A stretch of DNA of 64,000 nt, from the sequence record OV032902.1; one strand, written 5' to 3'. Positions 24,498-49,191 of the stretch are shown piece by piece. Each line of letters opens with the position of its first letter. Positions within the stretch are counted from its first letter, which is position 1. Below the pieces are notes generated by a model that searched no databases, had not been told where the DNA came from, and was given only the letters and a program-made list of their open reading frames with translations. The position numbers and the translations under genes are program-made.

Positions 24498-24503
24498 GAG
24501 ATG

Positions 24504-24527
24504 CTCTCCTACCTTCGGGTAGGAGAG
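24504..24527 (+). terminator. UUCG-loop terminator
   Basis: CTCTCCTACC-TTCG-GGTAGGAGAG followed by a T-rich run. Confidence 0.8.
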
Positions 24528-24560
24528 TAATCTTATTTATCCTTTCTTTTTTCTTTTGTC

Positions 24561-24571
24561 AAATTAGGTAG
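24561..24571 (+). promoter_or_regulatory. Candidate late-promoter motif AAAT-N3-RTAG
   Basis: AAATTAGGTAG between a terminator and a structural operon; the same motif occurs at 32745, 40794 and 47483. Confidence 0.4.
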
Positions 24572-24670: not shown

Positions 24671-25618
24671 ATGACTGATAACTATATCCGTCCGTTTTCG
24701 GTAGCATGGTATGCGAACATGCATAAGCAAGGGCAGAACATCTCAGAAGATAGTTTAACGGGTTTCCCAGAACTCGTAGCCACTGCTGGTCTAGAAGACC
24801 ATGATGAAACCAAAGCCTACCCTCGCAACTCGCTTGCATACAAGTCTGGCGCGCTGTTTCGTTCAAATAGTAACATTCCTGCAAACACTCCGTTTGTTGA
24901 AGGTCACGATGACCTAGAATGGACTAACGTTTCAGAAGCTAAGACACTTATTCCAAACCATAATACCTCGGCTACATATCAAAAAGATATGCCGGTGTAT
25001 TACAACGGTATGATCTATCGTGCGAAATCAGATAACCTAACAGGTGTCTTTGCTCGCGCGCAATGGGAGCGTATCTCTCAGCCACCTATGCGTCAATTCC
25101 TTGGTGCTGGTGATGCGGATACAATCCTGACTCAGGCTTATGCCTTACAAGAAATTATCTTTGCAGAAGACCGTACGATTAACGGCATCAAGTTCTTTAA
25201 TGGTGACCGCGTTCTAATTAAGAATGACCTAAACGGTTCCTTTGCAACTTCTGATTTCTATTACTTTCCATTTGATGTTGCTGAGCAACCTCAGACACCA
25301 CAAGATAGTACGGATAGTGTTCTTACTGGTACAATTGGCCAAGACGTTGACTTCTTCTTCGTTATCGCTAATGGCGAAGAAATTACTCTTAATACCAACG
25401 TAACAGATAAGATCGCATGGGCCACAACTGGCGCTGCTTACACAGGCAGTGGCTCTATTACTAAGATTGTTTACAATAACGATCTTATGGGCTCTAGCCA
25501 AGTTCTTGAGAAAGACACTGATTACACAATCAAGTCAGGTACTAACAATGTGATCGTTCTGACTGACATTGGTCTAGAACCAGATGACACACTTGTTGTG
25601 ACCTTTAATAACTCATAA
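24671..25618 (+). CDS. Virion fibre-associated protein with two CBM5/12-like repeats
   Basis: YPRNSLAYKSGALFRS..EWT and YQKDMPVYYNGMIYRAK..QWERI. Confidence 0.72.
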   Translation: MTDNYIRPFSVAWYANMHKQGQNISEDSLTGFPELVATAGLEDHDETKAYPRNSLAYKSGALFRSNSNIPANTPFVEGHDDLEWTNVSEAKTLIPNHNTSATYQKDMPVYYNGMIYRAKSDNLTGVFARAQWERISQPPMRQFLGAGDADTILTQAYALQEIIFAEDRTINGIKFFNGDRVLIKNDLNGSFATSDFYYFPFDVAEQPQTPQDSTDSVLTGTIGQDVDFFFVIANGEEITLNTNVTDKIAWATTGAAYTGSGSITKIVYNNDLMGSSQVLEKDTDYTIKSGTNNVIVLTDIGLEPDDTLVVTFNNS

Positions 25619-25629
25619 GGATTTCAAAA

Positions 25630-28600
25630 ATGGCTATTATTAGAAAAGCTCTCATTAAGTTTTATTTGACTAAAGCTGAAGCAGCGACTGCAAATGAAAC
25701 TCCGGGCGACATCGGTTACTTTAGTGACGGTGCCCCTGCCGGTTGGTTTGAAGCCTCAATCGATAATGGAAATCCTGCTGTCGATGGTAATACGCTACAA
25801 GGTAGTGAATCTAACCTTTACTGGAAGCGTATCGTTAATGCGGAAACTGAAGCTCCTACTCCGGTTCTTGTTCCAGATGCTTATGCGGAAGGTACTGCTT
25901 ATCAACAATACCAAATCGTTGAGTCTGGTGGCAAGCTGTACGTTTGTGATTCTGCTCACACGCCAACCGCTGCTGAAGTAACTAGCCTTGCTAAGGTTAC
26001 TGAACTTGGCACGGGCGCAGCTGGTATTGCTGATGTAGTCGCTGTGGAATACAAAGCCACCGAAACATACAAAGCATTTGAGCTTGTTTACATCGGCACG
26101 GATATCTTTGTTACTTCTTCTGCGCATACTGCCGATGCAGATAACGTAACCAACAAAGACCAGCTTATCCAGCTTAATGGCGGTGGCGGTTCTTTGGATG
26201 AAGTAGTTGCAAAAGAATACGTAGCTGCTACGCTATACAAGGCATATGAACTAGTGCGTATTGGTAGCGAAATCTTTATCTCTGGTTCAGAACACACGCC
26301 AACCGCTGGCGAAGTAGCTGACAAGTCTAAGCTTATCCCAATAAGTGAAGATAAAGATACTGGCCCTGGTGTTCATACATCAGTGGCTAACGAAACTGAT
26401 TACCGTAAAGGCGATGTTTTCAAACTAGCTAACGGTATCTTCATGCTTAAGGTTGACTTCACTACTGATGCAAATGCTACTGATGCAGAAGTAATCGCAC
26501 AGTGTGAAAAGCTAGCTGGTCCTGAAGCTTCTGTTCGTACTTCGTTTACCAATAGTACTGATTACTTCAAAGGCGATTTCTTTATCTTTGATTCTGGTAC
26601 TTACCGTGTTAAAGCTGACTTCCAGACCGATGCAAATGCTACTGAAGCAGAAATTATTGCAGCGTGTGATAAGCTTTCTGGCCCTACTCAGAAAACTTAT
26701 GCAGGCTTCCCTGCATCAACTGCATTCAGTATCGGCGATATTGTTACTGAAGATGACCGCAGCTATGTAGTTAAAACGGCGTTTAGTACTGGCGCGTCAG
26801 ACAACACGGTCACTGATCAAGAAACTAACCTTCTACCTTTGTTCGCAGAGCATTTGGTTCCACGTGTGTATAGTAATGGCGCAGTACTTAAAGAAAACGA
26901 AATCTTTGAGTATGGCGGTAACCTTTACTTTACTCCTAACTCGGTTGACGGTACGTCTACTAACCAAACAACTTGGGCGGAAATTGAATCAAGCTGCATC
27001 CTAGTTGCTCAGGTTCCAGTAACCGCAACTCCTGATTTCGTAGCAGCTAACACATACAACGCCAATGATGTTGTTAAATTCGACGGACTAGAATGGAAGC
27101 TTACTGGTACGCACACTGTCAATGATCCTATTGACTTGACTAACTGGTCTCGTGTTATCACAACAGGCGTTAACCGTGGTGAGCACAAAACAAACCATGT
27201 TTACTTGAAAGACGACATCGTCACAAGGAGCGGCATTGCTTATAAGGCAAACGCTAATGTGGACGACACCGTTAGTTTCGCCGAAGGATTATCAGGCGCG
27301 ACCTTTATTCGCCTAGACACAGCAGTGTTCGATGGACTGTCTAATTCCAAGGTTTATATAGTAGGCGATATCGTTTCAGCCGGTACGGCATCGTATGCAG
27401 TACACACTGCTTACAAGTCTGCTGCCGCTGCTACTGAAGCAGAGCTAGCTGCTAACTCTACATTGATTGCAACCAGTATCGAAACTTACTTGCCTACATA
27501 CACAAACGGTAGTGCATTGAAGAATGGTCAATTGTTCTTCTATGATGAAGCTGTTTATCGCGCAGACGCGGATAAAGATGGTACAACTGCTAGCGAAACC
27601 ACATGGGCTGAAATCGAAGGCGAAATGACGTTCTTGTTTAGCTTTAAGGTTGAACCGGCTCCTGCTGCATGGGCTAAGGCTAACGCTTATGCTGTTGGCG
27701 ATAAAGCCACTTATGCTGGTCAGGTTGTAGTTGCTACTGCTGCATCTGCTGCTAACGACGAGTTCTCGTATAGTGATTGGACCCGTGAATTGGATTATCC
27801 TTACAATCAGGGCGATCACGTAAACGGCCGTGCTTACATGAAGGGCGACGTAGTCTTTATTGATAGTGTTGAGTACATTGCACGCTCTAATGTTGATTCT
27901 GATGCCGGTGCTTCCGAAATCAAACTAGGCGTGTCTTCTGACTTCTATCGTTTGACTCCGACCACTCATAGTGATCTAGTTGCAGACACTTTATACTCTA
28001 ACTTTGATATCGTTATCAAAGAAGGCATTACGTATCTTGTAACGACTCCTATTCTTACAACTAGCTCTACAACCTGGAATGACCTTGTAGCGAACATGAC
28101 TGTGGTTGCAGATAACTCTGCGTATGCGGTTCGTGAATACGTTGCAGAAGAAGACCTGAAGAAGTACGAGTTTGTCGTAGAGCCCGCAACAGGTGACGTT
28201 TACGTTACAACTAGTGCTATTGCCGGCAACGCAGGTAACACATTCCAAATCGTTAAAGACAACGGCGTTCGCGTAGCTGAATCTCCAGTTACTCCTGTTC
28301 CTGACTTTGACGCTGGTGAGCTATATACAGAGAACGACGAAGTTCGTTTCGAAAGTATGGTGTACACAGCTAAAGACCAAACAGGTCGTTTAGTAAACGA
28401 TGCATTTAGCCTTACTTACTTTGAGCGTAACATTCCTGCCGGATTTAAGTTCGGTGACTTCGTAGCCAACAAGTTATACCTAAACGGTGACTTTGTTACA
28501 AATGGCGGCATAGAATACAAAGTTAAAGCAACTGGTACTTTTGCCACGTTAACTGAAACTAATACTACGTTTGAGCGTACAAGTACAATCTTCAAGTTTA

Positions 28601-31600
28601 CCCTGGAAGCAGCGAAGCGTTACATCCCAGGTGACTTGCTTTACTTGACGAGCGGTGCTTACTACGTGCGTAACGAGTTTACGACTAACAACCCTGCTGA
28701 TATTGATGACCACGCAGCCGACATTTATGTCATTGCTGAGAAAGATCATCCTCCAGTAGAAGAGTATGTTCCTACTCAAGATGGCGAAGAGTTCAAGTTG
28801 ATCGTTCATAATGAAGGTCTTTACTTCATTAAGACGGCCTGGACTGCTGATGTATCTAACGCAGATAGTGCTAACTGGACCAATGATACTTTTGACAAGA
28901 TCAAAGGCAACCTAGTTGAACTTGTTCCTCAGAAGAATCCTACTCCAATTGCGTTTGTTCAGGCTGATACATACCAAGAAGACGATTATGTTTCACATGA
29001 TGGTTTTAATTGGCATCGTAATGACTCTACGACTCGTAAGGGTGGTGACGCATTCAGTCTAGATCACTTCAATCGTGAAGAAGCTGGTGGTCAAAATCGT
29101 GGTACATTTACTTCCGGTCAACACTACTTATCTGGCGATAAAGTGTTCGACAACGGAATTGAATATCGTGCTAATACATTGATCAACTACGGCGATGTAA
29201 CGGTATTCGTTGAAGGTCTGGGCTTACAAGAGTTTGTTCGTATTACTCCAATCGTTCATCAAGGCTTTGCACCAGATACACTTTACATTCGTGGTGACTG
29301 GGTAATTGAAGACGGCGTTACATACTACGTGCAACCTGTGACTTTCTTTGAGTCTGGCGCAGCTGAAACACTGGCTGAATTTGAAGCACGTAATGAGGTA
29401 GAAGTGATTGCGGACCACCGCATCCTTAATCCTCGTGAGTACGTTGCCAAAGATAATGCCGAGCAAGGCGAGATCATTCAGTACCAAGGTTCCGTTTACT
29501 ACGTTACTACGGCGTGGGTTTCAGATACTACGGATGCTGATGCGGCTAACCATGTTAACCATGAATGGGATGCAGTTAAGGATAAAGTCGTTGCGCTTTA
29601 CCAAACACCTGCCCCAGTACTTCCGGTATTTGATGCAGCCACTGCATACAATGCCAATGACGAAGTTCAGGATAAATATGGTTTAGTTTGGACTCGTCGT
29701 AATGTTGCAGACGGAACAGCACAACCATTGACTGAAACTCACTGGACGCGTAATGATGCTGACCCGCAGATCTTCGAACATATTCCTGATCGCGAGTACA
29801 CATACCTGCCTAACGACAAGATTAAATACGGAACATCTTACTTCCACTTTAATCTAGCCAATGACCTTGCTTCGGCGGATATTGATGAATGGGCTACGTG
29901 GCTAGAAGCTAACACTCGAATCGAACCTACCGGCGAGATTAAGATTGTGGCTGGCAACGGGAGTCTGACCGGACTTGAGTATGTTGCACCTGGTCAACTA
30001 GTAAGCTTCCTAACGGACGGCACGCTTAATGGCCTTCAAGGCAAGCAAGGCGAAACATACGTTATTACGTCTACGATGCGTTCTACCACTCTTAACAAGG
30101 CATACTTTGTTAAGATTGCTGAGAAAGCTAAACTGGCAACTGCATTTGATGCTACGGCGACATATGCAACTGGTGACTTAGTTACTATTGCCGAAGATAG
30201 CTTTACTTATGAGCTAACCGGTACGCACAATGTTAACGATGCGTTTAACTTGACTAACTGGTCTCGTGTAGAACCAGCACAGCACCGTGGTGCACATAGC
30301 GATGCAGTTTACTATATCACCGGTGATAAGGTTACTAATGCTGGCAAAGAGTACGAAGCTCTTGGTCCTATTAGTAAGACAGCTTTTGCTGAAGGCATTG
30401 CAGGTAATACATTCAAGCGTGTTACTCAAAACGTTGCTGCTTCTTTAACGGCTGACATGTTCTATGTTGAAGGCGATATCTTTAACTTGAATGGTTATGA
30501 CCTAGAAGTAACTGCTGCGTTCCAAGCTGATGCTGACCCAACGTTCGCTGAGAACATTGCTAACATGCAGGCAATCAACGTAGATGAGAAATACTACTTG
30601 GCTGCTGCTGACGGCGTAGCGTTCCATGACTACAACAAGAAAGAGCATGTGTTTATCTTCACCGAAGATCGCTCGACTGAGTTGTTTAATGGTTTCACAC
30701 CTATGACTGGCGACCGCATGGTTCTTAAGCGCGACCGTACGGCTACGAACAACCCTCCAATAGCGGCTGACTTTGATATCTTCCTAGCGAAGCAAATCGA
30801 AGATGCTATTGAGCCGCATGATGATGGCACTGCTTACTTGACTGGCGACAAAGTAACTTACCAAGGTTTTGTTTGGACTTCTACTGAAGCTCAATCGGCT
30901 CTTGTTTGGGACTTTACTAAGTGGACTCGTGACCTGCCTGGTGGTGAACATCGCGGTACGTTCAGCAATGCTGTACACTACCGTACAGGCGACACCGTAA
31001 CCCATCCTGATGATGGTGCTTTGTATGCAATCAATTCTAACGTTGATAGCGTAGCTGCATTTAACATCGGCTCACTTGCGGCAGAATGGACGCGTGTTGG
31101 TCCTGGTATCTTCACGGATGCCTCGGTCGTGGCATGGAATACTCAGTTCTTTAAAGGCGATCGTCTATACTTCGGTAAGCAGTACCGTACTGTAACAGAA
31201 GACTTTGCGATTGGTGCTGACCCTGCCGATGGCTCTGTTCCTGAACTGGATGAAACCAAGCTTCGCATCGAAGGTCGTTGGGACCGCTCTAACGTTCGTA
31301 CTGTTACGGCAGACGAGTCTGTTAGTGCAGAAGAAGTTGTTCGCTACGGCAACAAACTTTACTTTGTGTTTGCTGACTATGTGCCAAGTGACCCTGTGGT
31401 TGCTGCCGAGCTAGAAGCGAAGATTTACGAACTCGTAAACTTTGAGTCCACTCAGCACGAAGCATACGATGCTGCCAAGATATATGCCGAAGGCGATATC
31501 GTTTCTTATCAAGACGAAATCTTCCAGCGTACTAATGATACCATTGGTGATGCAGGTAACTTTACTGCTGCTCGCTGGACTAAGTTGTCTGAGAAGAGTG

Positions 31601-32685
31601 TACGTACTGCTGGTGTTCTAGCAGACATGAATGACTGGTATGTTGGTGTTGATGACATAGTTCACTATCAAGGCATTACACTTACCGCTAAGGTAGCTCG
31701 CGGTGTTGATGAACTCAAGATTCCTTTCGATGATACTAAGTTCGATCGTGCTGGTAACTTTGTGTTTAATACGGCATTCTCTTACCTTGGCAGACGCGCT
31801 CTAATCAAAGGTGACTTTATCATTGACGGTCGTAACATGTATTTTGTTACAGCTGCTTTTGAGGTCCTTGATGGCGAGTCTTGGGATAATGCTCTTCGTA
31901 CACATCAATCTAGCTTCCGCTTAGTCGGTGACTATGAGTTACTTGATTGGCAAGCAGATACTTTCTATCGTACTGGTGACCTTGTTAAAGTACAGGGTTA
32001 TGAGATGGTAGTAGTTGCTAACCATACTTCAGCTTCTGCTTGGAATACTGGTGAGCTTCTTAAGTTTGTGTTGCGTGATCAGCCTACTTACGGCTTTACG
32101 ATGGAAGCTACTGACTTCATCCCGGCTGGAACTAAGTTTGATACTAACGGTGATGATGACTCAAGCACAGCACTGCCGTTTACTATTACTGGCACGGTTC
32201 CTTTGGCAAACATAAATCTGTTACTTCAAGTCGGTTTCCGCTTCTTTGTGAATAAGACTGATATCACAGACGCTATTGTGGTCGATGGTTCGGATGCAAC
32301 GCTCTTTGATATGGGCAGTATCTTCCTTGAAGCTGGAGATGTCTTAGAGATTGCTGGTTACCAGAATGGCGAAGGTACAAGTATCGCAGAAGTAGTCCAA
32401 GGTGGTTATGCTGACCTAACAGTTACTCCTACGACAGCTAATGTTTCATTGACGGATGCTAACAAAGGTCAAGTCATTGACATTACTGCGGCGATCACAG
32501 TAACTGCTGCTGGTGGTACTACTGGTTCTACATGGACTGTTGTTAACCGTTCAGGCGGACAACTAGCTGTTACACTGGGTACTGGTATTACGGCGATCGG
32601 TAACGTTAACGTTCAGGATGGTACAGCGATTACTCTAGTTATGCTAGACGCTACGACTGTGCTTATTGCTGGTGGTGTTGCTTAA
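25630..32685 (+). CDS. 2351-aa fibre protein with roughly 35 CBM5/12-like repeats
   Basis: Recurrent Y..GD.V...G..Y.(A/V)....F....W modules; beta-rich C-terminal tip domain typical of phage fibres. Confidence 0.8.
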   Translation: MAIIRKALIKFYLTKAEAATANETPGDIGYFSDGAPAGWFEASIDNGNPAVDGNTLQGSESNLYWKRIVNAETEAPTPVLVPDAYAEGTAYQQYQIVESGGKLYVCDSAHTPTAAEVTSLAKVTELGTGAAGIADVVAVEYKATETYKAFELVYIGTDIFVTSSAHTADADNVTNKDQLIQLNGGGGSLDEVVAKEYVAATLYKAYELVRIGSEIFISGSEHTPTAGEVADKSKLIPISEDKDTGPGVHTSVANETDYRKGDVFKLANGIFMLKVDFTTDANATDAEVIAQCEKLAGPEASVRTSFTNSTDYFKGDFFIFDSGTYRVKADFQTDANATEAEIIAACDKLSGPTQKTYAGFPASTAFSIGDIVTEDDRSYVVKTAFSTGASDNTVTDQETNLLPLFAEHLVPRVYSNGAVLKENEIFEYGGNLYFTPNSVDGTSTNQTTWAEIESSCILVAQVPVTATPDFVAANTYNANDVVKFDGLEWKLTGTHTVNDPIDLTNWSRVITTGVNRGEHKTNHVYLKDDIVTRSGIAYKANANVDDTVSFAEGLSGATFIRLDTAVFDGLSNSKVYIVGDIVSAGTASYAVHTAYKSAAAATEAELAANSTLIATSIETYLPTYTNGSALKNGQLFFYDEAVYRADADKDGTTASETTWAEIEGEMTFLFSFKVEPAPAAWAKANAYAVGDKATYAGQVVVATAASAANDEFSYSDWTRELDYPYNQGDHVNGRAYMKGDVVFIDSVEYIARSNVDSDAGASEIKLGVSSDFYRLTPTTHSDLVADTLYSNFDIVIKEGITYLVTTPILTTSSTTWNDLVANMTVVADNSAYAVREYVAEEDLKKYEFVVEPATGDVYVTTSAIAGNAGNTFQIVKDNGVRVAESPVTPVPDFDAGELYTENDEVRFESMVYTAKDQTGRLVNDAFSLTYFERNIPAGFKFGDFVANKLYLNGDFVTNGGIEYKVKATGTFATLTETNTTFERTSTIFKFTLEAAKRYIPGDLLYLTSGAYYVRNEFTTNNPADIDDHAADIYVIAEKDHPPVEEYVPTQDGEEFKLIVHNEGLYFIKTAWTADVSNADSANWTNDTFDKIKGNLVELVPQKNPTPIAFVQADTYQEDDYVSHDGFNWHRNDSTTRKGGDAFSLDHFNREEAGGQNRGTFTSGQHYLSGDKVFDNGIEYRANTLINYGDVTVFVEGLGLQEFVRITPIVHQGFAPDTLYIRGDWVIEDGVTYYVQPVTFFESGAAETLAEFEARNEVEVIADHRILNPREYVAKDNAEQGEIIQYQGSVYYVTTAWVSDTTDADAANHVNHEWDAVKDKVVALYQTPAPVLPVFDAATAYNANDEVQDKYGLVWTRRNVADGTAQPLTETHWTRNDADPQIFEHIPDREYTYLPNDKIKYGTSYFHFNLANDLASADIDEWATWLEANTRIEPTGEIKIVAGNGSLTGLEYVAPGQLVSFLTDGTLNGLQGKQGETYVITSTMRSTTLNKAYFVKIAEKAKLATAFDATATYATGDLVTIAEDSFTYELTGTHNVNDAFNLTNWSRVEPAQHRGAHSDAVYYITGDKVTNAGKEYEALGPISKTAFAEGIAGNTFKRVTQNVAASLTADMFYVEGDIFNLNGYDLEVTAAFQADADPTFAENIANMQAINVDEKYYLAAADGVAFHDYNKKEHVFIFTEDRSTELFNGFTPMTGDRMVLKRDRTATNNPPIAADFDIFLAKQIEDAIEPHDDGTAYLTGDKVTYQGFVWTSTEAQSALVWDFTKWTRDLPGGEHRGTFSNAVHYRTGDTVTHPDDGALYAINSNVDSVAAFNIGSLAAEWTRVGPGIFTDASVVAWNTQFFKGDRLYFGKQYRTVTEDFAIGADPADGSVPELDETKLRIEGRWDRSNVRTVTADESVSAEEVVRYGNKLYFVFADYVPSDPVVAAELEAKIYELVNFESTQHEAYDAAKIYAEGDIVSYQDEIFQRTNDTIGDAGNFTAARWTKLSEKSVRTAGVLADMNDWYVGVDDIVHYQGITLTAKVARGVDELKIPFDDTKFDRAGNFVFNTAFSYLGRRALIKGDFIIDGRNMYFVTAAFEVLDGESWDNALRTHQSSFRLVGDYELLDWQADTFYRTGDLVKVQGYEMVVVANHTSASAWNTGELLKFVLRDQPTYGFTMEATDFIPAGTKFDTNGDDDSSTALPFTITGTVPLANINLLLQVGFRFFVNKTDITDAIVVDGSDATLFDMGSIFLEAGDVLEIAGYQNGEGTSIAEVVQGGYADLTVTPTTANVSLTDANKGQVIDITAAITVTAAGGTTGSTWTVVNRSGGQLAVTLGTGITAIGNVNVQDGTAITLVMLDATTVLIAGGVA

Positions 32686-32698
32686 TAAATATTAGAAA

Positions 32699-32735
32699 CC
32701 TCTTCCCCTTGTGGGAAGAGGCTTTCTTTTTCTTT
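32699..32735 (+). terminator. Rho-independent terminator
   Basis: CCTCTTCCC-CTTGT-GGGAAGAGG followed by CTTTCTTTTT. Confidence 0.8.
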
Positions 32736-32744
32736 AACTTAATT

Positions 32745-32755
32745 AAATCGTATAG
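32745..32755 (+). promoter_or_regulatory. Candidate late-promoter motif
   Basis: AAATCGTATAG. Confidence 0.4.
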
Positions 32756-32807
32756 GTCTCACGACCTTTCTAACGTTAGAAAACTAAAACTCAAAGAGGA
32801 TTATAAC

Positions 32808-33881: not shown

Positions 33882-33892
33882 AGGAAATAACA

Positions 33893-36800
33893 ATGAGTTA
33901 TGTAACTAATTTCCCTGGTGGCTTTCAAAGCTCTACAGATAAGCCTCTAGATTACCGTGCTGTGGTAGACGACATCTCAGCACTAGAAGCAGTTGTGCTT
34001 CAAACTGTTTATATCGGTCTAGTTATCTACGATAAAGCGACTGGCAAACACTATGAGATCAAGGGTACGGATGGTACACAAGCTGGTCTTGTTTACTCTG
34101 TCTTTGGTCAAGGCAGTGATTCTGATTCTGCACTAGCCGATATCATTACTACTCGTAATCCAACTAAGAGTGATGACGCTGACTCTTCTGAGTTTACAGT
34201 CAACGCCCTTACAAGCTGGTTAAACAAAGACACAGGTGAGCTGTTCCTTTGTACGGACAACACTGCGGGTGCAGCTAATTGGATTCGTTACGTTACCGAA
34301 GGTGACTTGACTGGTTTAACTCCTGGTAATACTTTTGTCATCGAAGAATTAAACATCCCAGTTAATGCCCCAGCGGACAGTAATTACGAATTTAATATCA
34401 GTCTTCCAAATCTGACTGCGTATGTCAATTCAACTATAGATCTTTTCGTCAACGATGAATTGCTTGTGTCGACTCCATTAGTGATGAATACCGATGATTA
34501 TGTCATTACGGCTCCATTGAAGAAAAACGATAAAGTCGAATTTCGAATGGGTCTATCTGGCAATGTGCCTATTGAGGTTCTGGGCCTTGGTAATGGTTCA
34601 GAGGTTGCAGAATTTCTTCCAAATGGCGATATTATCTCGGCTTCGAGTGCGTCTTCCGATCCTGACATAAGAAGAATAAACACTAAAGACGGAACGATTA
34701 GTAGTGTTATTGAAACCGGGTTGCCGAGTGCTTTTATTTCGGAATCAGGCTCAATTAGATTAACTGTCGATTCAGAGGGAACTTTGTTCGCGTCTAGAAA
34801 TTCCAGAACTTCCGATGAGATTTATTTTCTTAAATTAGGCAGTAATTCATGGGAAACATTAACAATACCAGAAGGAGCGATAACATGTAGATGGCTATCG
34901 ATGTATGACGAAGATCATCTTTTAAATGTTGATTCGGACAATCAGCTCCTTCAAAAGATCAATAAGGTCACCGGTCAATCGTCGCCAGTCTCTAATGTTC
35001 CTGGTACGATTGCTACTAACTGGAGATCCAGATACGTAGGAAACGGCCAGCTTTTGTTCACACGAGGAACTAGCCTAGGACCTATTCTTTTTGATACGGT
35101 AAATGAAACAACACTCATAGATTTTTGGGCAACTGCCGGAGAAATCGTTTTTGGTTCGAATGAGCAGTTTTACGGTGGCGATAAAGTAGAAGATGATGTT
35201 TTCATCTTTAACACATTGAACATGGATAATCACTATTTATGCCGAAAAGGAAAATGGGAAATCGACGCAGGTCCTTTAAATAGTTCCCGCAATGTTGCTG
35301 TTTCTGACCTAGGTGTTTATTTTTATCCTGCTGCTTCGACTACATTGGCTTCTACACTGCGACTTTATTCGCATGCTGATAGCTTCCGTGCTTCGGCCTA
35401 TGCGGAACCAACTGCTTACTTTGCACCTACTCTAGATCTTGCTTTTGGTATCTTAGAGACACGCGACCCGATTGAAACAGATGATTCTGCTTCCGTTACT
35501 TACGATATCGCAGTTAACCAGACTTGGAAGAATGAAACAACAGGTTCTGTGTTTGTTTGTGCGGATGCAACTCCTGGCGCAGCTGTTTGGAAGAAGTACG
35601 TAACAGAAGATGAGCTTCCAGGTAAGTCTACGCTTAACCTAATGCGCTTCCCTGAGTTAAGAGTTTCAGTTGATTTGGAAACCGCCGTTCCAGACGAAAC
35701 TACACCGCATCAATTTTCAACTCTTGATCTTACGATCCCTAAAGACGGTAAATATCACTTAGGTGGTAGCTTCCCTATTTCAGGTCTTAACCTTCCTCCG
35801 ATGAGTACAAGTCAAGCAGGTAGTGCTATTACTAACTTCTGTCTTGATTTGATGTTGTTCCGCGATAGTACATTGAGTCCTCTAGTTCGTGGCGATATTT
35901 CGATCATGACTAACGACGTGACGCAGGATAACTATGACTTCTTTGGTAAGGCAAGCTTTGATGAGATCTTGGATCTTAAAGCAGGCGATGTTCTAACGTG
36001 GCAATTCTACACCACTTCAAACATCCCACCTACGGCAGATGCATTCCTGTTCATTAACCCTACAGATGGTAACTCTGTTGCGTCTCAGGGCCACAAGTCA
36101 GCTCCGTGGCTGCGTGAACTAGAAGTAGCTACTTATCTTCCTGCTGGTGATTACACGTACGGTATCAAGTCTACTCGTGACCCAGGTCCAACGGATGATG
36201 AGAACTCTACTGACTTCGCTATTGCGATTAACCAAGTATGGTTTAACGAAACAAATGGTAAGACATTTGTTTGTCAAGACGCTACAGCGGACAATGCAGT
36301 ATGGAATGCTTACGTAACAGCTGACCAAATCCCTGGCTTCCAGGATACTCAGTATGTTTCATTGACAGATGTTACTCAATTCGCCACTGTAAGCGAAACA
36401 GCACTTCACCGTTTTGGTATTACACTAGCTGGTACCGATCTATCGGGCGCTACCCTGTGGATGACTGTTAATGGCAATGATGCTATTCAGTTTGATTTGA
36501 GTGGTCTAACGGGTGCCGGTACACGCATGTACTCTACGGACCAATTTACGGCTCTTAACAAAGATGACGTGATTGCATTCCGTTGGGTTCCTAATGGCGC
36601 TGTTATTAGTTCGTTTGGTTTTGCTGGTGGTATTCAGCCAACTACTTACTATGCTCCATTGAAAGACTTTGAACTAGGTATCAAGGAAACTCGTGACCCT
36701 ACTCCAAATGATGACGAAAACTCTCCTGGTTTGTTTATTCAAGTAAACCAAATCTGGCATAACGAAGCTACGGCTTCTATCTTTGTATGTACAGATGCTA

Positions 36801-39800
36801 CTGTGGGAGCGGCTGTTTGGAAGCGTATGGTTACAGAGAATGACTTGCCTGGCTTTGACGATACTAGCACTTTTTCTTTGACTGGTCCAGATGATGTTTT
36901 TGTTGCTCCTCATGACAGAGACTATACGGCGGAAATCAGCATTTCTGGTTTGAATCTGGACAAAGTGGATTTCTGGGTAAAAGTAAATGACAGTGCGGTT
37001 TTCACTTTAAGTTCTTCTGATATTTCACCAGGCAATACATCGGCACTTGCAACAGTTCCTCTTTCTTTGAGTACTGGAGACTCTGTTAGTCTGGATTATA
37101 CGAATAAAGCCGAACTAACTGATATTACTGGAAACCTCCCAACGTCTGCCACTGGTGCGATATATATTCTAGGTAATTACTATTACAATGTAGATCCAAC
37201 AAACAACGAACTTAGACGTGCGTCAGTGAGTAATACTTCATCATGGACTGATAACTGGACCACTCCTAACGGACAGGTTATCAACATGACTAGTGCTGAT
37301 GTATACAACGCACAGTTTAGCGAAGGTTTTCTTTTTGTCATAGATAGAACTACTGACAAACTTTATCGCTTCGACAAAGAAGGCAATGCCAATATATGGG
37401 AAAACTCGGGACTAGAATCAAACACTAACCCTATATACTTTAGCTCCGAAGATCGCCAAACTTATCTATGGGATACTGCCAATAAAATCATTGAACGCTC
37501 TACGGGAAGTTCTGGTGCCTGGAGTACCGTTTATAATGCAAACAATGACCCAAACAATACTACTAATACTCTTGATTTCATGGAAGCAGTTAACGGAGAA
37601 ATTTATTTCCTTAGTCGCACCGATGGTGTACTGAAACGTGTCGTAAATACTAACCTGTCAGTAGACGTAGGCACGGTGGAAAATCCAGCTGAAGTAATTG
37701 GGTCACTCACTTTCGGCTTTGCGGCCGAAGAAATGAATCAATTTATTTTTGGAGATAGAAGTGGAGATAAACTTGTCACGTATAACTACGTGACCGGAGA
37801 ATGGGCTTACGAGTCATACTATACGGATGGCAATTATCGCTTAGAGGCACTTCCCGCTGGCCTGCACTCTTTCGGTCGCTTATTCTTTGATAGCGACTTA
37901 GAACGATTATTCCTGGTAGATAACTTCGGTAAACTTACATGGCTAACTGAGGGATATAATTTTGGCGGCATGTCGCGAGCTAGAAGTTTCGATGAAGGCA
38001 TTGCAGTGTTTTACGATACTTTGTCGCAACCTGGTGATACATATTACCGTGCAGACTTTGGTGTAATCACGGGAATTACCGTTTCTTCTAAGTCAGAACT
38101 TCGTGGTACGTATATCCCTACGGACCAATTCGAATTAGGTATTGTTACTGATCGTGACCCTACTGAAACGGATGATGCTGATTCAACTGAGTTCTTCGTT
38201 GTTCAAAACCAATACTGGCAGAACACCGCCAATGGTTACACATGGATCTGTAAAGACGCTACGCCTGGCGCAGCTGTTTGGAAGAAGCATGTAACAGAAG
38301 ATGAAATCACAGGTATTGACTTTACTGAGTCTTATGCTCTGGTGATTCCTGAAACCGTTAATCCTACGACAGCTGTAGAAAGTGACCCTGTCACGATTAC
38401 GGAAGACAAGACATATCGATTTGATATTCGTTCTCGTATGCAGGTTCCTCGTGGTAAATCAGTTACTGTTGAGGTATTGAAGAATGATGCAGTTGTATGG
38501 TCTAATACTCAGACTACGTATAACTACTCTGATTCAGTAGAACTTCCAGTGGTTACAGACGACATCGTTAAACTTCGTGCTACTTTGTCTGATACAAACC
38601 GCTGGCATAACTCAATGACTAACATTACTGGTCCTGCTGTTACATTCGGCGATAGTCGTGGTGCTGCTGCAACTCGTGACTTTGTAATGATGGTTGAGTC
38701 TAGTAATAACAGTATTCTGTTAGCTGGACGTGACGACGAGTGGGTTGATGTCTCGAACGAAGCACTTGCTCCTACATGGTCACAGGTATATGGTATCACA
38801 GCCGACGAAGAATCGTTCTATGTTATCGACCGTGGTCTAGATCAAATCTGGCAACGTCGTAACGGTGGCCTATGGTCACAGATCGATGGTCATACATTTA
38901 CTGATCTGTTTGACATTGCTTATGCACAAGGCAAGCTTTACTGTCTTGATGAGGCATCTAATAGCGGCGGTAGCTCAATTGAAGTTTACGATATTGAGAA
39001 TGATAGTTGGAGTACGCTTACTTATACTGGCCTTCCTACGATAGCCAATGCTCGTGGTATGACAGTTGACCCTGATACAGGTGATGTTTTCTTGTATGAC
39101 ACTGGTGCGACCAATAAAGAAATCTTCAAGTTTACAGCTGCGACGCAGACCTGGGCAGCCTGGGCAATGACTAACCGTGGTAACCCTAACCATTATCCTT
39201 TCCACATGACTATTCATGACGGTAAGCTATGGTACGGTGACATGGATGAAACTAACGTTATTCGTACTATTCGTACGATTGACTTAGTAACAGAAGTTCA
39301 TGAAGACTGGGGTGCTGCTAACGGACAGAGTGATGATCTAAGTCGTCATATTCGTGGTATTGCTTTCCGTGATGGCAAGCTCTACGGTGGTGACTTGTTG
39401 AATGATACTATTTGGTCATTCGAGACATACAAAGTCGGTCCAGCATCGGCTGGTTTCGGTACAGCTCCTCGTGCGCATTACTTGCCTGCAAATGAAATCA
39501 ATGTCGGTATTAAGGAAACTCGTGATCCTACGGAAAACGATGATTCTTCAAGTACTGATTACGATATCAAGGTTAACCAGCTATGGTTGAATGAAACCAA
39601 TGGTTCTTTCTGGATCTGTAAGAAAGATACTTTGGGCGCGGCAGTTTGGGCTCGTTTCTCTACTGATACAGAAGAGATCCCGCCTATCGGTCAGCGTCTG
39701 GATGTCGAAGGTGGTCGCCTAATCTCCAATAACGGTGTTTACTGGGCAAACGATGCATCTAGTGCAGGTACAGCGGCTAACCAAGCAGTTGTTGCAGAAG

Positions 39801-40741
39801 ACGTTACTTGGTTCATGTTCCATTCTTGGGACGATGACATGATCGAAGGTCGCGGTATGCGTATCAGTCTTCCGGCAGGTAACCTAGATGAAACTGATAA
39901 TGTGTACATCAATTTAGATATTGAAACATATTCTCCGCTTCTAGTTTATCGTACTGGTCCATTTAGTCCGCGCTGGAAAGTATCGGACATGATGGGTAGT
40001 ATTATCGAGCTTCGTCCTGCTAACAGTGGCACGGGTTGGGTAGCCAATGAAACACGTACAGCTAGTCGCGATGACTTTGGTCCATTGCGCAAAGTAGACG
40101 GCAATACCCGTTTACGTAGTACGGCTCGCGACCCTCGTGAGATGCACGTTGATGAAATCTTAACCAAGCGTCATGTTGATTCATACCGTAAAGTTAAGAC
40201 AGGTACATTTACTGGTGAAGCTACAACAGAGTCACTTGTAGAGTTATTTTACGCTAAGTTTAATGACGACTTTGGTATTTCCTTTGGTGCATTTGTTGAA
40301 GGTAACCAGGGCGGATTTGTCCCTGTTGTTCAGATGCGTGACTATGTTTCTAGCGGTAACTATGGCTGTCAAAGCTTCTTCCGATGTAATAGTTCGGGCG
40401 GAGACGGTTCTTCTCAGAACAAAGTCTTTATGATTGAGTTAGAGAAAAGTAGTTCACTAACTAAGAACCGTATACGTACATTTGGTGGCGACGACATGGA
40501 TGGCGTAACAGACGTTGCTGATTTAGATGGCGTCATGCACCCTTATGGTTGTACTGGACACTTCGAATTCCAGATTTTCACCATTAGTACTAGTGGCCTG
40601 GAATACCAAGCAGCTAAAGGTTCAATCCGTTTTGCTTCTTTTGATGCAGCAAGGGATCAGAACTCACAAGTTGTTCAATACATTGCGGAAATCGAGTACA
40701 TTACTCGTGAGCAAGATATCCAGGATGATACTAGCTGGTAA
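33893..40741 (+). CDS. 2282-aa modular fibre protein with six conserved linker repeats separating variable domains (some beta-propeller-like)
   Basis: The N-terminal F..PLDYRAVV..Y.GLV.Y motif is typical of fibres; TRDP..DD..NQ.W.N...G..F.C.DAT.GAAVW occurs six times. Confidence 0.8.
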   Translation: MSYVTNFPGGFQSSTDKPLDYRAVVDDISALEAVVLQTVYIGLVIYDKATGKHYEIKGTDGTQAGLVYSVFGQGSDSDSALADIITTRNPTKSDDADSSEFTVNALTSWLNKDTGELFLCTDNTAGAANWIRYVTEGDLTGLTPGNTFVIEELNIPVNAPADSNYEFNISLPNLTAYVNSTIDLFVNDELLVSTPLVMNTDDYVITAPLKKNDKVEFRMGLSGNVPIEVLGLGNGSEVAEFLPNGDIISASSASSDPDIRRINTKDGTISSVIETGLPSAFISESGSIRLTVDSEGTLFASRNSRTSDEIYFLKLGSNSWETLTIPEGAITCRWLSMYDEDHLLNVDSDNQLLQKINKVTGQSSPVSNVPGTIATNWRSRYVGNGQLLFTRGTSLGPILFDTVNETTLIDFWATAGEIVFGSNEQFYGGDKVEDDVFIFNTLNMDNHYLCRKGKWEIDAGPLNSSRNVAVSDLGVYFYPAASTTLASTLRLYSHADSFRASAYAEPTAYFAPTLDLAFGILETRDPIETDDSASVTYDIAVNQTWKNETTGSVFVCADATPGAAVWKKYVTEDELPGKSTLNLMRFPELRVSVDLETAVPDETTPHQFSTLDLTIPKDGKYHLGGSFPISGLNLPPMSTSQAGSAITNFCLDLMLFRDSTLSPLVRGDISIMTNDVTQDNYDFFGKASFDEILDLKAGDVLTWQFYTTSNIPPTADAFLFINPTDGNSVASQGHKSAPWLRELEVATYLPAGDYTYGIKSTRDPGPTDDENSTDFAIAINQVWFNETNGKTFVCQDATADNAVWNAYVTADQIPGFQDTQYVSLTDVTQFATVSETALHRFGITLAGTDLSGATLWMTVNGNDAIQFDLSGLTGAGTRMYSTDQFTALNKDDVIAFRWVPNGAVISSFGFAGGIQPTTYYAPLKDFELGIKETRDPTPNDDENSPGLFIQVNQIWHNEATASIFVCTDATVGAAVWKRMVTENDLPGFDDTSTFSLTGPDDVFVAPHDRDYTAEISISGLNLDKVDFWVKVNDSAVFTLSSSDISPGNTSALATVPLSLSTGDSVSLDYTNKAELTDITGNLPTSATGAIYILGNYYYNVDPTNNELRRASVSNTSSWTDNWTTPNGQVINMTSADVYNAQFSEGFLFVIDRTTDKLYRFDKEGNANIWENSGLESNTNPIYFSSEDRQTYLWDTANKIIERSTGSSGAWSTVYNANNDPNNTTNTLDFMEAVNGEIYFLSRTDGVLKRVVNTNLSVDVGTVENPAEVIGSLTFGFAAEEMNQFIFGDRSGDKLVTYNYVTGEWAYESYYTDGNYRLEALPAGLHSFGRLFFDSDLERLFLVDNFGKLTWLTEGYNFGGMSRARSFDEGIAVFYDTLSQPGDTYYRADFGVITGITVSSKSELRGTYIPTDQFELGIVTDRDPTETDDADSTEFFVVQNQYWQNTANGYTWICKDATPGAAVWKKHVTEDEITGIDFTESYALVIPETVNPTTAVESDPVTITEDKTYRFDIRSRMQVPRGKSVTVEVLKNDAVVWSNTQTTYNYSDSVELPVVTDDIVKLRATLSDTNRWHNSMTNITGPAVTFGDSRGAAATRDFVMMVESSNNSILLAGRDDEWVDVSNEALAPTWSQVYGITADEESFYVIDRGLDQIWQRRNGGLWSQIDGHTFTDLFDIAYAQGKLYCLDEASNSGGSSIEVYDIENDSWSTLTYTGLPTIANARGMTVDPDTGDVFLYDTGATNKEIFKFTAATQTWAAWAMTNRGNPNHYPFHMTIHDGKLWYGDMDETNVIRTIRTIDLVTEVHEDWGAANGQSDDLSRHIRGIAFRDGKLYGGDLLNDTIWSFETYKVGPASAGFGTAPRAHYLPANEINVGIKETRDPTENDDSSSTDYDIKVNQLWLNETNGSFWICKKDTLGAAVWARFSTDTEEIPPIGQRLDVEGGRLISNNGVYWANDASSAGTAANQAVVAEDVTWFMFHSWDDDMIEGRGMRISLPAGNLDETDNVYINLDIETYSPLLVYRTGPFSPRWKVSDMMGSIIELRPANSGTGWVANETRTASRDDFGPLRKVDGNTRLRSTARDPREMHVDEILTKRHVDSYRKVKTGTFTGEATTESLVELFYAKFNDDFGISFGAFVEGNQGGFVPVVQMRDYVSSGNYGCQSFFRCNSSGGDGSSQNKVFMIELEKSSSLTKNRIRTFGGDDMDGVTDVADLDGVMHPYGCTGHFEFQIFTISTSGLEYQAAKGSIRFASFDAARDQNSQVVQYIAEIEYITREQDIQDDTSW
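34151..39680 (+). repeat. Six dispersed ~55-aa repeats inside the 33893 fibre gene
   Basis: Copies start near 34151, 35447, 36161, 36677, 38138 and 39506. Confidence 0.85.
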
Positions 40742-40753
40742 TTAAGATTAAGT

Positions 40754-40790
40754 CCTCTCTCCTTCGGGAGAGAGGCTTTCTTTTTCTTTT
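40754..40790 (+). terminator. UUCG-loop terminator
   Basis: CCTCTCTCC-TTCG-GGAGAGAGG followed by CTTTCTTTTT. Confidence 0.85.
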
Positions 40791-40793
40791 GTT

Positions 40794-40804
40794 AAATTTT
40801 ATAG
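40794..40804 (+). promoter_or_regulatory. Candidate late-promoter motif
   Basis: AAATTTTATAG. Confidence 0.4.
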
Positions 40805-40837
40805 GTCCGATGACCTCGAATTCAAAAGGAGATAAAG

Positions 40838-42511
40838 ATGTTCTTTACTATCTTACCTGGCATAATTCACCAGGATAAAGTTATCCGAGAAAACAGTGGT
40901 GTTTTACCCACTACGCCGGATGCTGTAGATACTGCGGTACTAGCAATTGATACTTCCGCAGATACCGGTACCCAAGGTGACTGGACTACAAGCGCAGCAG
41001 TAATTGTATTCGAAGCTACAAATGTAGATAGTCGTGCAACTGCTGTAGAACTTCACAGTGACACTGCAAAGATAGGTGACTTTACCGAAGCAAATGGTCG
41101 CTACCTATATAGTTATAATAACCCTCAGGATGATTCCAAGGTTAGCTTCAAGATTGTAGTCAAAACACCGGACGGTGATACTGAAACCGCCCTGCAAGAA
41201 GTTACTATGGAAGCTCCTGCTCCTGTGGCAAACTATAGCTATATTAACTATTACAGTTCTTGGGCTACTAGTTGGTTTAATGCCGCTAATGCTGTTGACC
41301 CTAATCATCGTCGTATGGCAAATACTCCAGGTTACTTTAGTGATATCATGATTGCTTTCGTTCGTCCTAATATGACCTTCGATAAAACAGCCCCAGACAT
41401 CACAAGAGTCGCTACAGGCCTGGATTATCCTAATACTGGACCTACTCCTCATGAAGGTCTTAAGGATGACGTAGAGAAAGCACAGGCCAAAGGACAGAAA
41501 GTTCTTGTCTCCGTTGGTGGTGCTACTTATGGTCGTCCTGATATTTCTGATGCATGGCAAAACATGTATGATGAAGCTAAGTACATTGCTACGGCAGGTA
41601 CGGGTTCTATTAACCGAGTTAACACACCAACAATGCAATCAATGATTGAGTTTATTGAGTACTTCAATCTAGATGGCATTGACTTGGACTTTGAGGATGA
41701 CCCGGCATGGTGGGACGGTCATACAGTTGGTACTACACGATGGCAAAAGTATCTAGATGTTTATTATCATCTATTGATGTTTAACCATTATGTTGCCGAC
41801 AGAGCTGCTGCTATCCTAGGCAAGCCTATGGAGAAAGGTACGGCTTGTTGGTCTACTGGCTGGCACGTTACTCCGGATACCAATGCCGATGTTGCAACTC
41901 CAAATGCGTCACATGGTCTTACTTCTGTGTGGGGTGGGCGTGCAGGTCGTGAGCGTGCAATGTTCGGTGGCTTTACTCATCCGGAACTAGGTGCGGTTAA
42001 TGCTCGTAACTTTGTGACTAAGTACATTAACATGTCTTATGACTTTGGTCCACTTGGTAGCTACGCTGATGACACAGAAGCTTTAACTAACGACGTAACA
42101 TACGACCCAATCAATGTTTATGTTGAGGCTCGTGAAATAGTGACAGACATTGATTCAGTTATGACTGTAGGTATCTGTCCTGAGCCTTTCGGATGGCAAG
42201 CCGATGGTTCTAAGATGATGGTTAAGGACGCAGACTGTGCTCCTTCTGGTAACCATCGTACCCGATTATATCGTGACGGCTACAACCGCGTAATCGACAA
42301 GCCATTCTCTGCTGAGAACCTGGCCACTCGATTCTTGGATGTAGTTGGTAATAATGTAAACGATGGCTTTATTTTGTGGGCTGGTTACAAAGTTGCTGGT
42401 ACTTATACTTATAACGGTACTCCTTCTGCTAACGCTACAACGGCGTCAAAAGAAATCGCACGAGTACTTGACCTCGCCGATAAAGACAACTCGCACGATA
42501 TTCATACGTAA
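40838..42511 (+). CDS. GH18 glycoside hydrolase (chitinase-like) with N-terminal Ig-like domain
   Basis: YYSSW, IMIAFVRP, KVLVSVGGATY and an intact DGIDLDFE (DxDxE) catalytic motif; INMSYD; no signal peptide. Confidence 0.85.
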   Translation: MFFTILPGIIHQDKVIRENSGVLPTTPDAVDTAVLAIDTSADTGTQGDWTTSAAVIVFEATNVDSRATAVELHSDTAKIGDFTEANGRYLYSYNNPQDDSKVSFKIVVKTPDGDTETALQEVTMEAPAPVANYSYINYYSSWATSWFNAANAVDPNHRRMANTPGYFSDIMIAFVRPNMTFDKTAPDITRVATGLDYPNTGPTPHEGLKDDVEKAQAKGQKVLVSVGGATYGRPDISDAWQNMYDEAKYIATAGTGSINRVNTPTMQSMIEFIEYFNLDGIDLDFEDDPAWWDGHTVGTTRWQKYLDVYYHLLMFNHYVADRAAAILGKPMEKGTACWSTGWHVTPDTNADVATPNASHGLTSVWGGRAGRERAMFGGFTHPELGAVNARNFVTKYINMSYDFGPLGSYADDTEALTNDVTYDPINVYVEAREIVTDIDSVMTVGICPEPFGWQADGSKMMVKDADCAPSGNHRTRLYRDGYNRVIDKPFSAENLATRFLDVVGNNVNDGFILWAGYKVAGTYTYNGTPSANATTASKEIARVLDLADKDNSHDIHT

Positions 42512-43494: not shown

Positions 43495-43528
43495 CCCTCT
43501 GCCTCAGGGCAGGGGGATTATCTTTTTT
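43495..43528 (+). terminator. Hairpin with U-tract
   Basis: CCCTCTGCC-TCAG-GGCAGGGGG followed by ATTATCTTTTTT. Confidence 0.6.
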
Positions 43529-47482: not shown

Positions 47483-47493
47483 AAATCCTGTAG
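47483..47493 (+). promoter_or_regulatory. Candidate late-promoter motif
   Basis: AAATCCTGTAG. Confidence 0.4.
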
Positions 47494-49180: not shown

Positions 49181-49191
49181 CGGAGAAGAAA

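Follow-up and report, generated by a model that had tools for sequence, protein, structure and literature searches.

Why does a phage of vibrios carry a gene for an enzyme of glycoside hydrolase family 18 (GH18) directly behind genes for very long, repeat-rich fibre proteins, and what might the two have to do with each other? The DNA analysed here, which we call the window, is a 64-kb stretch that matches at 100% positions 256,254-320,253 of OV032902.1, the final part of the genome of Vibrio phage vB_VpaM_sm033 (sm033; 320,253 bp; host Vibrio parahaemolyticus). sm033 is a phiKZ-like jumbo phage; among its genes are those for a nuclear shell protein and for multi-subunit RNA polymerases, together with structural genes of the phiKZ type. 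Its nearest sequenced relatives for the genes considered here are the Yong phages and BONAISHI, the latter reported as phiKZ-like (PMC6207643). Five genes are at the centre of the question, gp298, gp299, gp300, gp301 and gp302, all of them on the + strand.

We read the region as a distal tail-fibre (receptor-binding) gene cluster with a GH18 enzyme gene appended to it, in which modules resembling those of the carbohydrate-binding family CBM5/12 serve mainly architecture, while the GH18 enzyme, tail-associated or released at burst, acts on polymers of N-acetylglucosamine (GlcNAc). Taken as a whole, we hold this reading with somewhat more confidence than doubt. An earlier sequence-only reading of the same DNA had proposed here, over three transcription units, a candidate phage system for attaching to chitin or other glycans and digesting them.

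The GH18 enzyme gp302

The 557-residue product of gp302 (40838..42511, + strand) opens with a conserved N-terminal peptide (40838-40912, +), followed by a probable immunoglobulin (Ig)-like domain (40937-41203, +) and a TIM-barrel catalytic domain (41225-42508, +) that holds the motif DGIDLDFE (41672-41695, +). The motifs SVGGAT, DGIDLDFE and NMSYD are all present and are invariant in the eight nearest relatives: SxGG (strand 3) is represented by S225-V-G-G, MxYD (strand 6) by M399-S-Y401-D402, and DxxDxDxE, the motif whose catalytic Glu ends strand 4, by D279-G-I-D282-L-D284-F-E286, which aligns with DGVDLDWE of 1ITX. Across a family alignment of 55 sequences, taken from 499 profile matches, D279, D282, D284, E286, Y401, D402 and W514 are conserved in at least 90%. 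As a single sequence gp302 scores 28.7 bits against Pfam PF00704 (cut-off 29.6), and 50 of the 55 relatives match that family. The family profile matched 141 solved GH18 chains in the PDB with a best E of 1e-16, the best 60 of these matches all being GH18 chitinases or chitinase-like proteins. Furthermore, an AlphaFold2 (AF2) model of gp302 has a predicted local distance difference test score (pLDDT) above 90 over most of the barrel (residues ~130-557), and in a Foldseek search of the PDB its top 49 matches are GH18 enzymes, with E values down to 4e-12 at a probability of 1.00, ChiA-type chitinases being the best. Judged by sequence and modelled fold, gp302 is an intact GH18 enzyme of a chitinase-like subfamily with all catalytic motifs in place; the sequence-only reading had named a GH18 enzyme with an intact DxDxE motif.

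That reading had also remarked on an Ig-like N-terminal domain and on the lack of a signal peptide. The first of these finds low-confidence support, residues 34-122 being predicted to form the β strands of a β-sandwich (pLDDT 50-65) with local Foldseek matches to phage Ig domains; the second agrees with a crude hydropathy comparison, in which signal or lipoprotein leaders were obvious in most cellular GH18 homologues and in none of the phage clade. The N-terminal peptide of ~25 residues is common to the homologues P0002, P0003 and P0041.

Two other roles for gp302 were considered and rejected. The endolysin of the phage is gp286 (window 15350-16261), which combines a weak GH19 match with PG_binding_1, and an inactive, lectin-like member of the GH18 family is ruled out by the conservation of the catalytic residues across the 55 relatives.

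As substrate we predict a polymer of β-1,4-linked GlcNAc, chitin being the likeliest. Phages that infect three different Vibrio species (V. parahaemolyticus, V. coralliilyticus and V. mediterranei) have kept the catalytic domain at 38-84% identity, and bacterial relatives have the architectures of chitinases, carrying ChitinaseA_N, CBM5/12, CBM2 and fn3 domains. The same observations bear on the idea of a tail-borne endo-β-N-acetylglucosaminidase that is directed at GlcNAc-containing capsule, O-antigen, biofilm polysaccharide or peptidoglycan of the host rather than at chitin. According to reviews, most virion glycosidases act on host polysaccharides, and the structural glycosidase Gp255 of the jumbo phage BpSp acts on the host wall (PMC4870245); in addition, 9 of the 55 relatives of gp302 also match the EndoS TIM-barrel model. 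We nevertheless consider such a host-envelope enzyme very unlikely. Serotype-specific depolymerases usually diverge much more than this catalytic domain, the conservation of which suggests a substrate common to the phages of the three species; the chitinase architectures of the bacterial relatives and the nature of the best 60 solved-structure matches also argue against it, and sm033 already encodes an endolysin of family GH19 as well as a large tail protein that resembles a lysin.

An anchor module shared by fibre proteins and GH18 enzymes

A possible connection between the enzyme and the tail emerges from gp298 (24671..25618, +; 315 residues), which has an orthologue with 47% identity in the metagenomic contig L005. 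A leader and two CBM5/12-like repeats make up its N-terminal ~140 residues (24671-25090, +), a module of the tail-anchoring type (alignment A6). The sequence-only reading had counted gp298 among the CBM5/12-like repeat proteins; the signal is weak here and confined to one or two modules (hhalign E 2e-4). The same anchor module stands at the N-terminus of a giant unannotated open reading frame (ORF) that starts at 49192, of BONAISHI ORF141 and of the L005 orthologue of gp298. It is also found in four GH18 enzymes (P0006, P0007, P0009 and P0013), those from BONAISHI, from Yong XC32 and from two metagenomic phages, the N-termini of which are colinear with the giant protein and gp298 from about residue 5, with pairwise E values down to 6e-14. 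By A6 homology, the two-repeat module occupies the extreme N-terminus in gp298, in the giant ORF and in the GH18 enzymes of the sister clade formed by BONAISHI and the Yong phages. For the BONAISHI enzyme, ORF238, the anchor link rests on this homology because its CBM5/12 score lies below the Pfam cut-off (21 bits vs 26.2).

Compared with solved structures, the A6 profile matched residues 27-125 of gp015 of Agrobacterium phage 7-7-1 (9rkv_M; E 6e-15) and residues 28-127 of Milano gp124 (8fqc_P1; E 3e-14), with weak matches to T4-type proximal long-tail-fibre subunits and an F-pyocin fibre. In the papers on Milano and 7-7-1 the matched regions are anchoring or tail-binding parts that contact the baseplate, disulfide bonds joining the Milano module to proteins of the wedge and the sheath. 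A CBM12-like domain is likewise found in the particle-binding part of TSP1 of phage CBA120, where sugar binding is not known (PMC3966878). From these three placements, the established role of the module type in phage tails is attachment and architecture. In sm033 it would mount both gp298 and the giant protein on the baseplate, and the presence of homologous modules in gp298, the giant protein and the sister-clade GH18 enzymes suggests one docking site with exchangeable payloads.

BONAISHI ORF238 (L002:14464-16188) is annotated as hypothetical; it is a GH18 protein with an N-terminal module of the fibre-anchor type. GH19 and GH23 are the only glycosidase families listed in the paper on the BONAISHI genome, in which the GH18 of this phage went unnoticed (PMC6207643).

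Distribution and genomic context of the GH18 gene

Of 50,697 phage genomes, no more than six have this type of GH18, all of them Vibrio jumbo phages: sm033, four Yong phages and BONAISHI. A scan of IMG/VR with the GH18 alignment gave no relative and a single metagenome scan gave only distant loci with 25-34% identity. Phages very rarely encode GH18 enzymes, which accounted for 14 of 1.43 million soil viral genes in one survey. The literature searched contained no mention of sm033 and no account of GH18 in Vibrio jumbo phages.

The sequence-only reading had suggested co-occurrence across related jumbo phages as a way to examine the link between fibres and enzyme, and here the picture is divided. 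The GH18 gene lies directly 3' of a gp301-type fibre gene in the close relatives L004 (13-bp gap) and L006 (6-bp gap), and in sm033 it follows gp301 after 96 bp, that is, after one terminator-promoter junction. On its 3' side, L004 and L030 have the same block as sm033, with a gp304-like gene, a helicase gene, a gp308-like gene and the giant ORF; the L030 contig starts just before the GH18 gene, leaving its upstream side unseen, and L006 ends after it. In the BONAISHI/Yong clade, in contrast, the GH18 gene is far from the fibre genes, yet its product carries the anchor module.

The GH18 is probably a tail-borne glycosidase, since its sister-clade orthologues carry the anchor module and its gene adjoins a fibre gene in at least two close relatives; the sequence comparisons suggest this strongly in the case of the sister-clade enzymes and more weakly in that of gp302. 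The virion association proposed by the sequence-only reading is plausible on these two grounds, although gp302 has no anchor module of its own. The enzyme would be made late and would either ride on the tail or leave with the burst, to cleave β-1,4-GlcNAc polymers, the likeliest being the chitin of particles colonised by vibrios. Fused to the anchor module, the BONAISHI and Yong enzymes would amount to a tailspike-like chitinase, and in sm033 the module may have been replaced by the short conserved peptide and the Ig-like domain, with the gene directly behind the fibre genes.

Several observations weigh against this reading. The GH18 gene lies among nucleotide-metabolism or small early-like genes in BONAISHI, where it is found beside the genes for ribonucleotide reductase and thymidylate kinase, and also in Yong XC32 and contigs L028 and L029; in Yong XC32 and L028 it is moreover a lone + strand gene. 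Such surroundings suit an auxiliary gene better than a structural one. In gp302 the anchor module was not found when A6 was compared with residues 1-135 (hhalign probability 0.3%), and its candidate attachment features are limited to the conserved peptide and the low-confidence Ig-like domain. The usual tailspike design is a trimeric β-helix, unlike the GH18 TIM barrel. The Foldseek TM-scores of the gp302 model are modest (0.36-0.52), for which reason we take the barrel to represent a divergent subfamily, and the substrate is deduced entirely from family and domain context. The promoter-like motif described below is found ahead of a deoxyribonucleotidase/DprA/helicase block as well, so that the temporal class of the motif is not fixed. 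Finally, the literature searched yielded no virion proteome for this lineage, and the BONAISHI paper contains none (PMC6207643).

Part of this evidence would also fit a soluble auxiliary GH18 that is not in the virion, but acts on imported chitooligosaccharides in the cell or on surrounding chitin after lysis and so alters nutrient supply or signalling, its neighbourhood to fibre genes in sm033 being incidental. The moron-like or metabolic contexts in BONAISHI, Yong XC32, L028 and L029, the missing anchor module of gp302 and the gene's own terminator and promoter in sm033 would all be expected of such an enzyme, and there is precedent in a chitinase encoded by a prophage, which helps its host to grow on chitin (PMC11788074). 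We regard this explanation as rather unlikely, given that the clade with the 'metabolic' contexts is exactly the one with the tail-anchor-type N-terminal module and that the fibre gene is only 6-13 bp away in two relatives. Ig-like domains, too, are reportedly typical of virion surface proteins, and because gp302 has no signal peptide, its action outside the cell would be limited to the time after the burst. A tail-borne glycosidase thus remains the reading that we prefer.

CBM5/12-like modules of gp299

The fibre protein gp299 (25630..32685, +; 2351 residues) matches Pfam CBM_5_12 and the 'tail fiber' family PHROG 9851, which is the sole PHROGs match among the proteins under study; an NCBIfam scan gave no meaningful match. 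Against PF02839 (CBM_5_12) gp299 reaches 109.5 bits (E 7.8e-32; cut-off 26.2). Its central part consists of eight super-repeats of ~215 residues with four CBM5/12-like modules each (27025-31941, +; super-repeat alignment A5), followed by the best single module (31942-32067, +) and a C-terminal domain (~32077-32682, +), and further modules occur in the N-terminal 465 residues. A profile grown from one of its own modules detects at least 21 copies, and the super-repeat count gives ~32.

Profiles were needed for the comparison with the PDB because whole-protein phmmer searches with gp299, gp301 and gp302 gave nothing useful. With the module profile, the matches were the CBM12 pairs of Vibrio chitin oligosaccharide deacetylases (E 2.4e-8) and a number of binding domains from chitinases. 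When one super-repeat was modelled with AF2, the block means of pLDDT were 73-94 over modules A-C, while the fourth module was modelled poorly (pLDDT <50). In Foldseek the best matches of this model are 9RKV, the tail fibre of Agrobacterium phage 7-7-1 (9e-6), and 8FQC, the Milano receptor-binding complex; the tandem CBM12 of the deacetylase, the tail fibre of cyanophage A-1(L) and the isolated chitin-binding domains 2RTS and 2D49 rank lower. By sequence and by the small β-module fold of the model, the gp299 repeats are members of the CBM5/12 family, and their designation as CBM5/12-like in the sequence-only reading stands.

Whether they bind chitin is another matter. In characterised CBM5/12 domains, exposed aromatic residues, in a pair or a row, stack against the sugar chain. 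An adjacent Trp/Tyr pair after strand 2 is absent from all 21 gp299 modules, as the sequence-only reading had itself cautioned in pointing to repeats without the WW/YW motif, and any Trp at all is found there in only 8 of the 21; the aromatics that are conserved are a core Tyr and a terminal Trp or Phe. Because the two-module unit anchors the solved fibres of 7-7-1 and Milano, and because of the missing aromatic pairs, we infer that the main tasks of the CBM5/12-like modules are to build the fibres and to anchor proteins to the virion, and we do not take them as demonstrated chitin binders.

The proposal of the sequence-only reading, that the arrays of gp298 and gp299 bind chitin or mucus surfaces and that the GH18 then frees the virions or opens a path to cells, has to be weighed at this point. 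The modules are true CBM5/12 homologues with the Vibrio deacetylase pairs as their closest non-phage matches, an array of more than 20 of them would bind with high avidity, the GH18 gene adjoins a fibre gene in L004 and L006 and is close behind one in sm033, and vibrios colonise chitin. Set against this are the absent aromatic pairs and the stronger matches to anchoring or structural fibre parts of Agrobacterium phages and a cyanobacterial phage, whose hosts have no chitin link; in the solved Agrobacterium phage structures it is the baseplate that the two-module unit touches. The domain with a CBM12-like fold in CBA120 TSP1, which is not known to bind sugar, and the separation of GH18 and fibre genes in the BONAISHI/Yong clade point the same way, and we think this proposal unlikely. 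We likewise see little chance for a related reading, in which a tail chitinase, fused to a fibre-anchor module in the sister clade, and multivalent CBM5/12-like arrays with low glycan affinity would enable virions to stick to the chitin particles on which their hosts live and to make their way through them. Phage adherence to mucus would then have its equivalent on chitin, supplemented by an enzyme step for release or penetration. Scenarios of docking and release or of chemoattraction are speculation.

gp300 and gp301

The second pair of genes fits the fibre cluster. gp300 (32808..33881, +; 357 residues) has no family match in scans of Pfam, PHROGs and NCBIfam and is a conserved partner gene: an orthologue directly precedes the gp301-type gene in each of L005 (37% identity), Yong XC32 (37%) and BONAISHI (ORF144, 28%). 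An alternative TTG start at 32709 was discarded as it lies within a terminator hairpin and upstream of the promoter-like motif, and the annotated ATG at 32808 was therefore taken as the start of gp300.

gp301 (33893..40741, +) encodes a fibre protein of 2282 residues with homologous fibres in L004, L005 and L006, and the order gp298-gp299-gp300-gp301 is syntenic in L005. Its N-terminal 74 residues (33893-34114, +) are the sole part kept in BONAISHI ORF145 and a Yong ORF; since they are conserved and the remainder varies across phages, they form a probable attachment adaptor with a variable distal part. The counterpart of gp301 has 73 residues in Yong XC32 (L027:8998-9219) and 262 in BONAISHI ORF145 (L026:9001-9789), the N-terminal adaptor being kept in both, and the distal part is thus extremely variable in length or truncated in some members.

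The sequence-only reading had described gp301 as a lectin/propeller cassette fibre. The cassettes are indeed there, in the form of six Trp-rich motifs of ~55 residues (starting at residues 86, 522, 760, 932, 1419 and 1875), each followed by a β-rich segment. The three propeller-like inserts (roughly 34595-35407, 37145-38092 and 38630-39472, +) give a signal near the threshold only (KIB1-4/Kelch, 27.1 bits vs a cut-off of 27.4), with faint Kelch and NHL propeller matches in the L004 and L005 homologues, and a lectin function was not borne out, a CBM64 match (E 0.03) being too weak for use. A C-terminal domain (~39680-40738, +) completes the protein.

Transcription units and a promoter-like element

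The five genes are distributed over three consecutive units, gp298 and gp299 forming unit 1, gp300 and gp301 unit 2, and gp302 beginning unit 3. Each unit is preceded by an intrinsic terminator on the + strand, with a hairpin and a U-run: one closes the upstream unit (24502..24529; 12-bp stem, -24.3 kcal/mol, z -6.4), one lies 3' of gp299 (32699..32721; -19.2 kcal/mol, z -3.8) and one 3' of gp301 (40754..40775; -19.0 kcal/mol, z -3.1). The motif AAAT-N3-RTAG stands 20-35 nt past each of them, with the extended consensus GTYAAAT-N3-RTAG, and gives a promoter-like element ahead of unit 1 (24561..24571, +), unit 2 (32745..32755, +) and unit 3 (40794..40804, +). The hairpins and the motif positions bear out what the sequence-only reading had described, three terminator-bounded units each behind the same motif.

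The motif count itself is at chance level, with 5 in the window vs 5.9 expected and 22 in the genome; what stands out is the placement. All five sites in the window are on the + strand, intergenic and behind a hairpin, and by the record annotation 16 of the 22 sites in the genome are intergenic and point at the next gene. With a rough ORF mask, 11 of the 22 fall in non-coding DNA vs 5% expected (p ~3e-9). GTYAAAT-N3-RTAG also occurs 5' of gp304 and gp308, 5' of the virion structural genes SM033_00148, 00163 and 00248-251, and 5' of SM033_00253, which adjoins the major head gene. It is a general phage promoter-like element, probably of structural or late class as far as its placement tells, and no description of such a candidate promoter class in this chimallivirus was found in the literature searched. 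The motif as a private mark of the three units is ruled out by its general occurrence in the genome. This, together with the distance between GH18 and fibre genes in the BONAISHI/Yong clade, counts against the three units as a dedicated system.

Neighbouring genes

Downstream of gp302, unit 3 continues with an unannotated ORF (42516-42989, +) and is completed by gp303 (43033-43488, +), two small genes that are tandem paralogues and are both absent from the relative L004; a terminator hairpin (~43495-43516) ends the unit after gp303. The unannotated ORF sits in the annotated 520-bp 'gap' after gp302.

Further along, gp308 (47519..49180, +; 553 residues) has a promoter motif at 47483, a weak EPTP match and orthologues in L004 and L030, and is the small partner of the giant unannotated ORF (49192..64000, +). 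The latter has no stop from 49174 to the end of the window, which is also the end of the record (4942 codons; ATG at 49192), and consists of the N-terminal anchor-type module and 39 DUF285 (BspA-like) repeats. The first coding sequence of the sm033 record (L007:13-7539; 2508 residues) has 21 further DUF285 repeat stretches, and the two are probably a single protein of more than 7,000 residues cut by the linearisation of the record, with the limit that their reading frames disagree when the record ends are simply abutted. One arrangement occurs three times in the window: a terminator-promoter junction is followed by a gene for 315-553 residues and, at most ~12 bp on, by a giant gene for at least 2,282 residues (24671-25618/25630-32685; 32808-33881/33893-40741; 47519-49180/49192-64000). 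Adding 24671-40741 to 47519-64000 gives ~32.5 of the 64 kb, and the estimate of the sequence-only reading that adhesion-type proteins take up more than half of the window was correct.

A GH19 and PG_binding_1 architecture like that of gp286 is also encoded near the GH18 gene in contig L028, and BONAISHI ORF138 is reported as GH19.

Comparison with known systems

The closest parallel for the anchor module is found in Milano gp124 (8FQC) and 7-7-1 gp015 (9RKV), which have the same two tandem CBM5/12-like repeats over ~100 residues at the extreme N-terminus. There the module precedes a β-helix and a jelly-roll tailspike, whereas the proteins that begin with it here are gp298, a giant DUF285 protein and, among the sister phages, a protein with a GH18 barrel, and gp299 strings many modules of this type into a very long array; attachment to the baseplate is shown for the Agrobacterium phages and inferred for sm033. 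CBA120 TSP1 (ORF210) is comparable in that its subdomain D2 has a CBM12-like fold in the particle-binding N-terminal part (PMC3966878), but it is a single domain in a tailspike of an E. coli phage, and no sequence match to TSP1 was recovered from sm033. The chitin oligosaccharide deacetylases of Vibrio (3WX7, 4NY2, 9JT0) have tandem CBM12 domains, which belong to the same module family (E 2.4e-8 to 1e-5) and superpose on the gp299 super-repeat fold over about 100 aligned columns with a root mean square deviation of 4.7 A. The gp299 modules differ from these in lacking the conserved segment with Trp or the aromatic pair, and they occur by the dozen in a fibre, as opposed to a pair on an enzyme. 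As a caution for annotation, CBM5/12 matches in phage fibres mark a structural or anchoring module and are not evidence of chitin binding.

With bacterial GH18 chitinases, such as Bacillus circulans ChiA1 (1ITX) and the ChiA of Serratia and Vibrio, gp302 shares the TIM barrel and the SxGG, DxxDxDxE and MxYD motifs, and its N-terminal β-sandwich ahead of the barrel recalls that of ChiA. In addition to the modest TM-scores given above, its identity to the solved structures that rank highest by fold is only 11-15%. The insertion domain of GH18 chitinases measures ~70-90 residues, and according to the AF2 secondary structure gp302 has no room for it between strand 7 and helix 7. Other differences are a distinctive, conserved WSTG...GGRAGRER segment, the lack of a signal peptide and the fact that gp302 is encoded by a phage.

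Among phages, the virion chitinase of Bacillus phage Basilisk and Gp255 of vB_BpuM_BpSp resemble the enzyme proposed here as stand-alone, structural glycoside hydrolases of large phages (PMC4870245). Their hosts are Gram-positive, Gp255 is a baseplate-bound GH25 with LysM that acts on peptidoglycan, and presence in the virion was established there by proteomics (PMC4870245) and is deduced for sm033. The GH18 that was overlooked in the BONAISHI genome, and the type as a whole with its six carriers among the 50,697 phage genomes, would probably extend the virion-associated depolymerases, otherwise known, by a tail-borne GH18 on a Vibrio jumbo phage. Vibrios live and exchange genes on chitin; a chitinase on the phage particle, if our reading is true, would tie phage predation directly to that surface.

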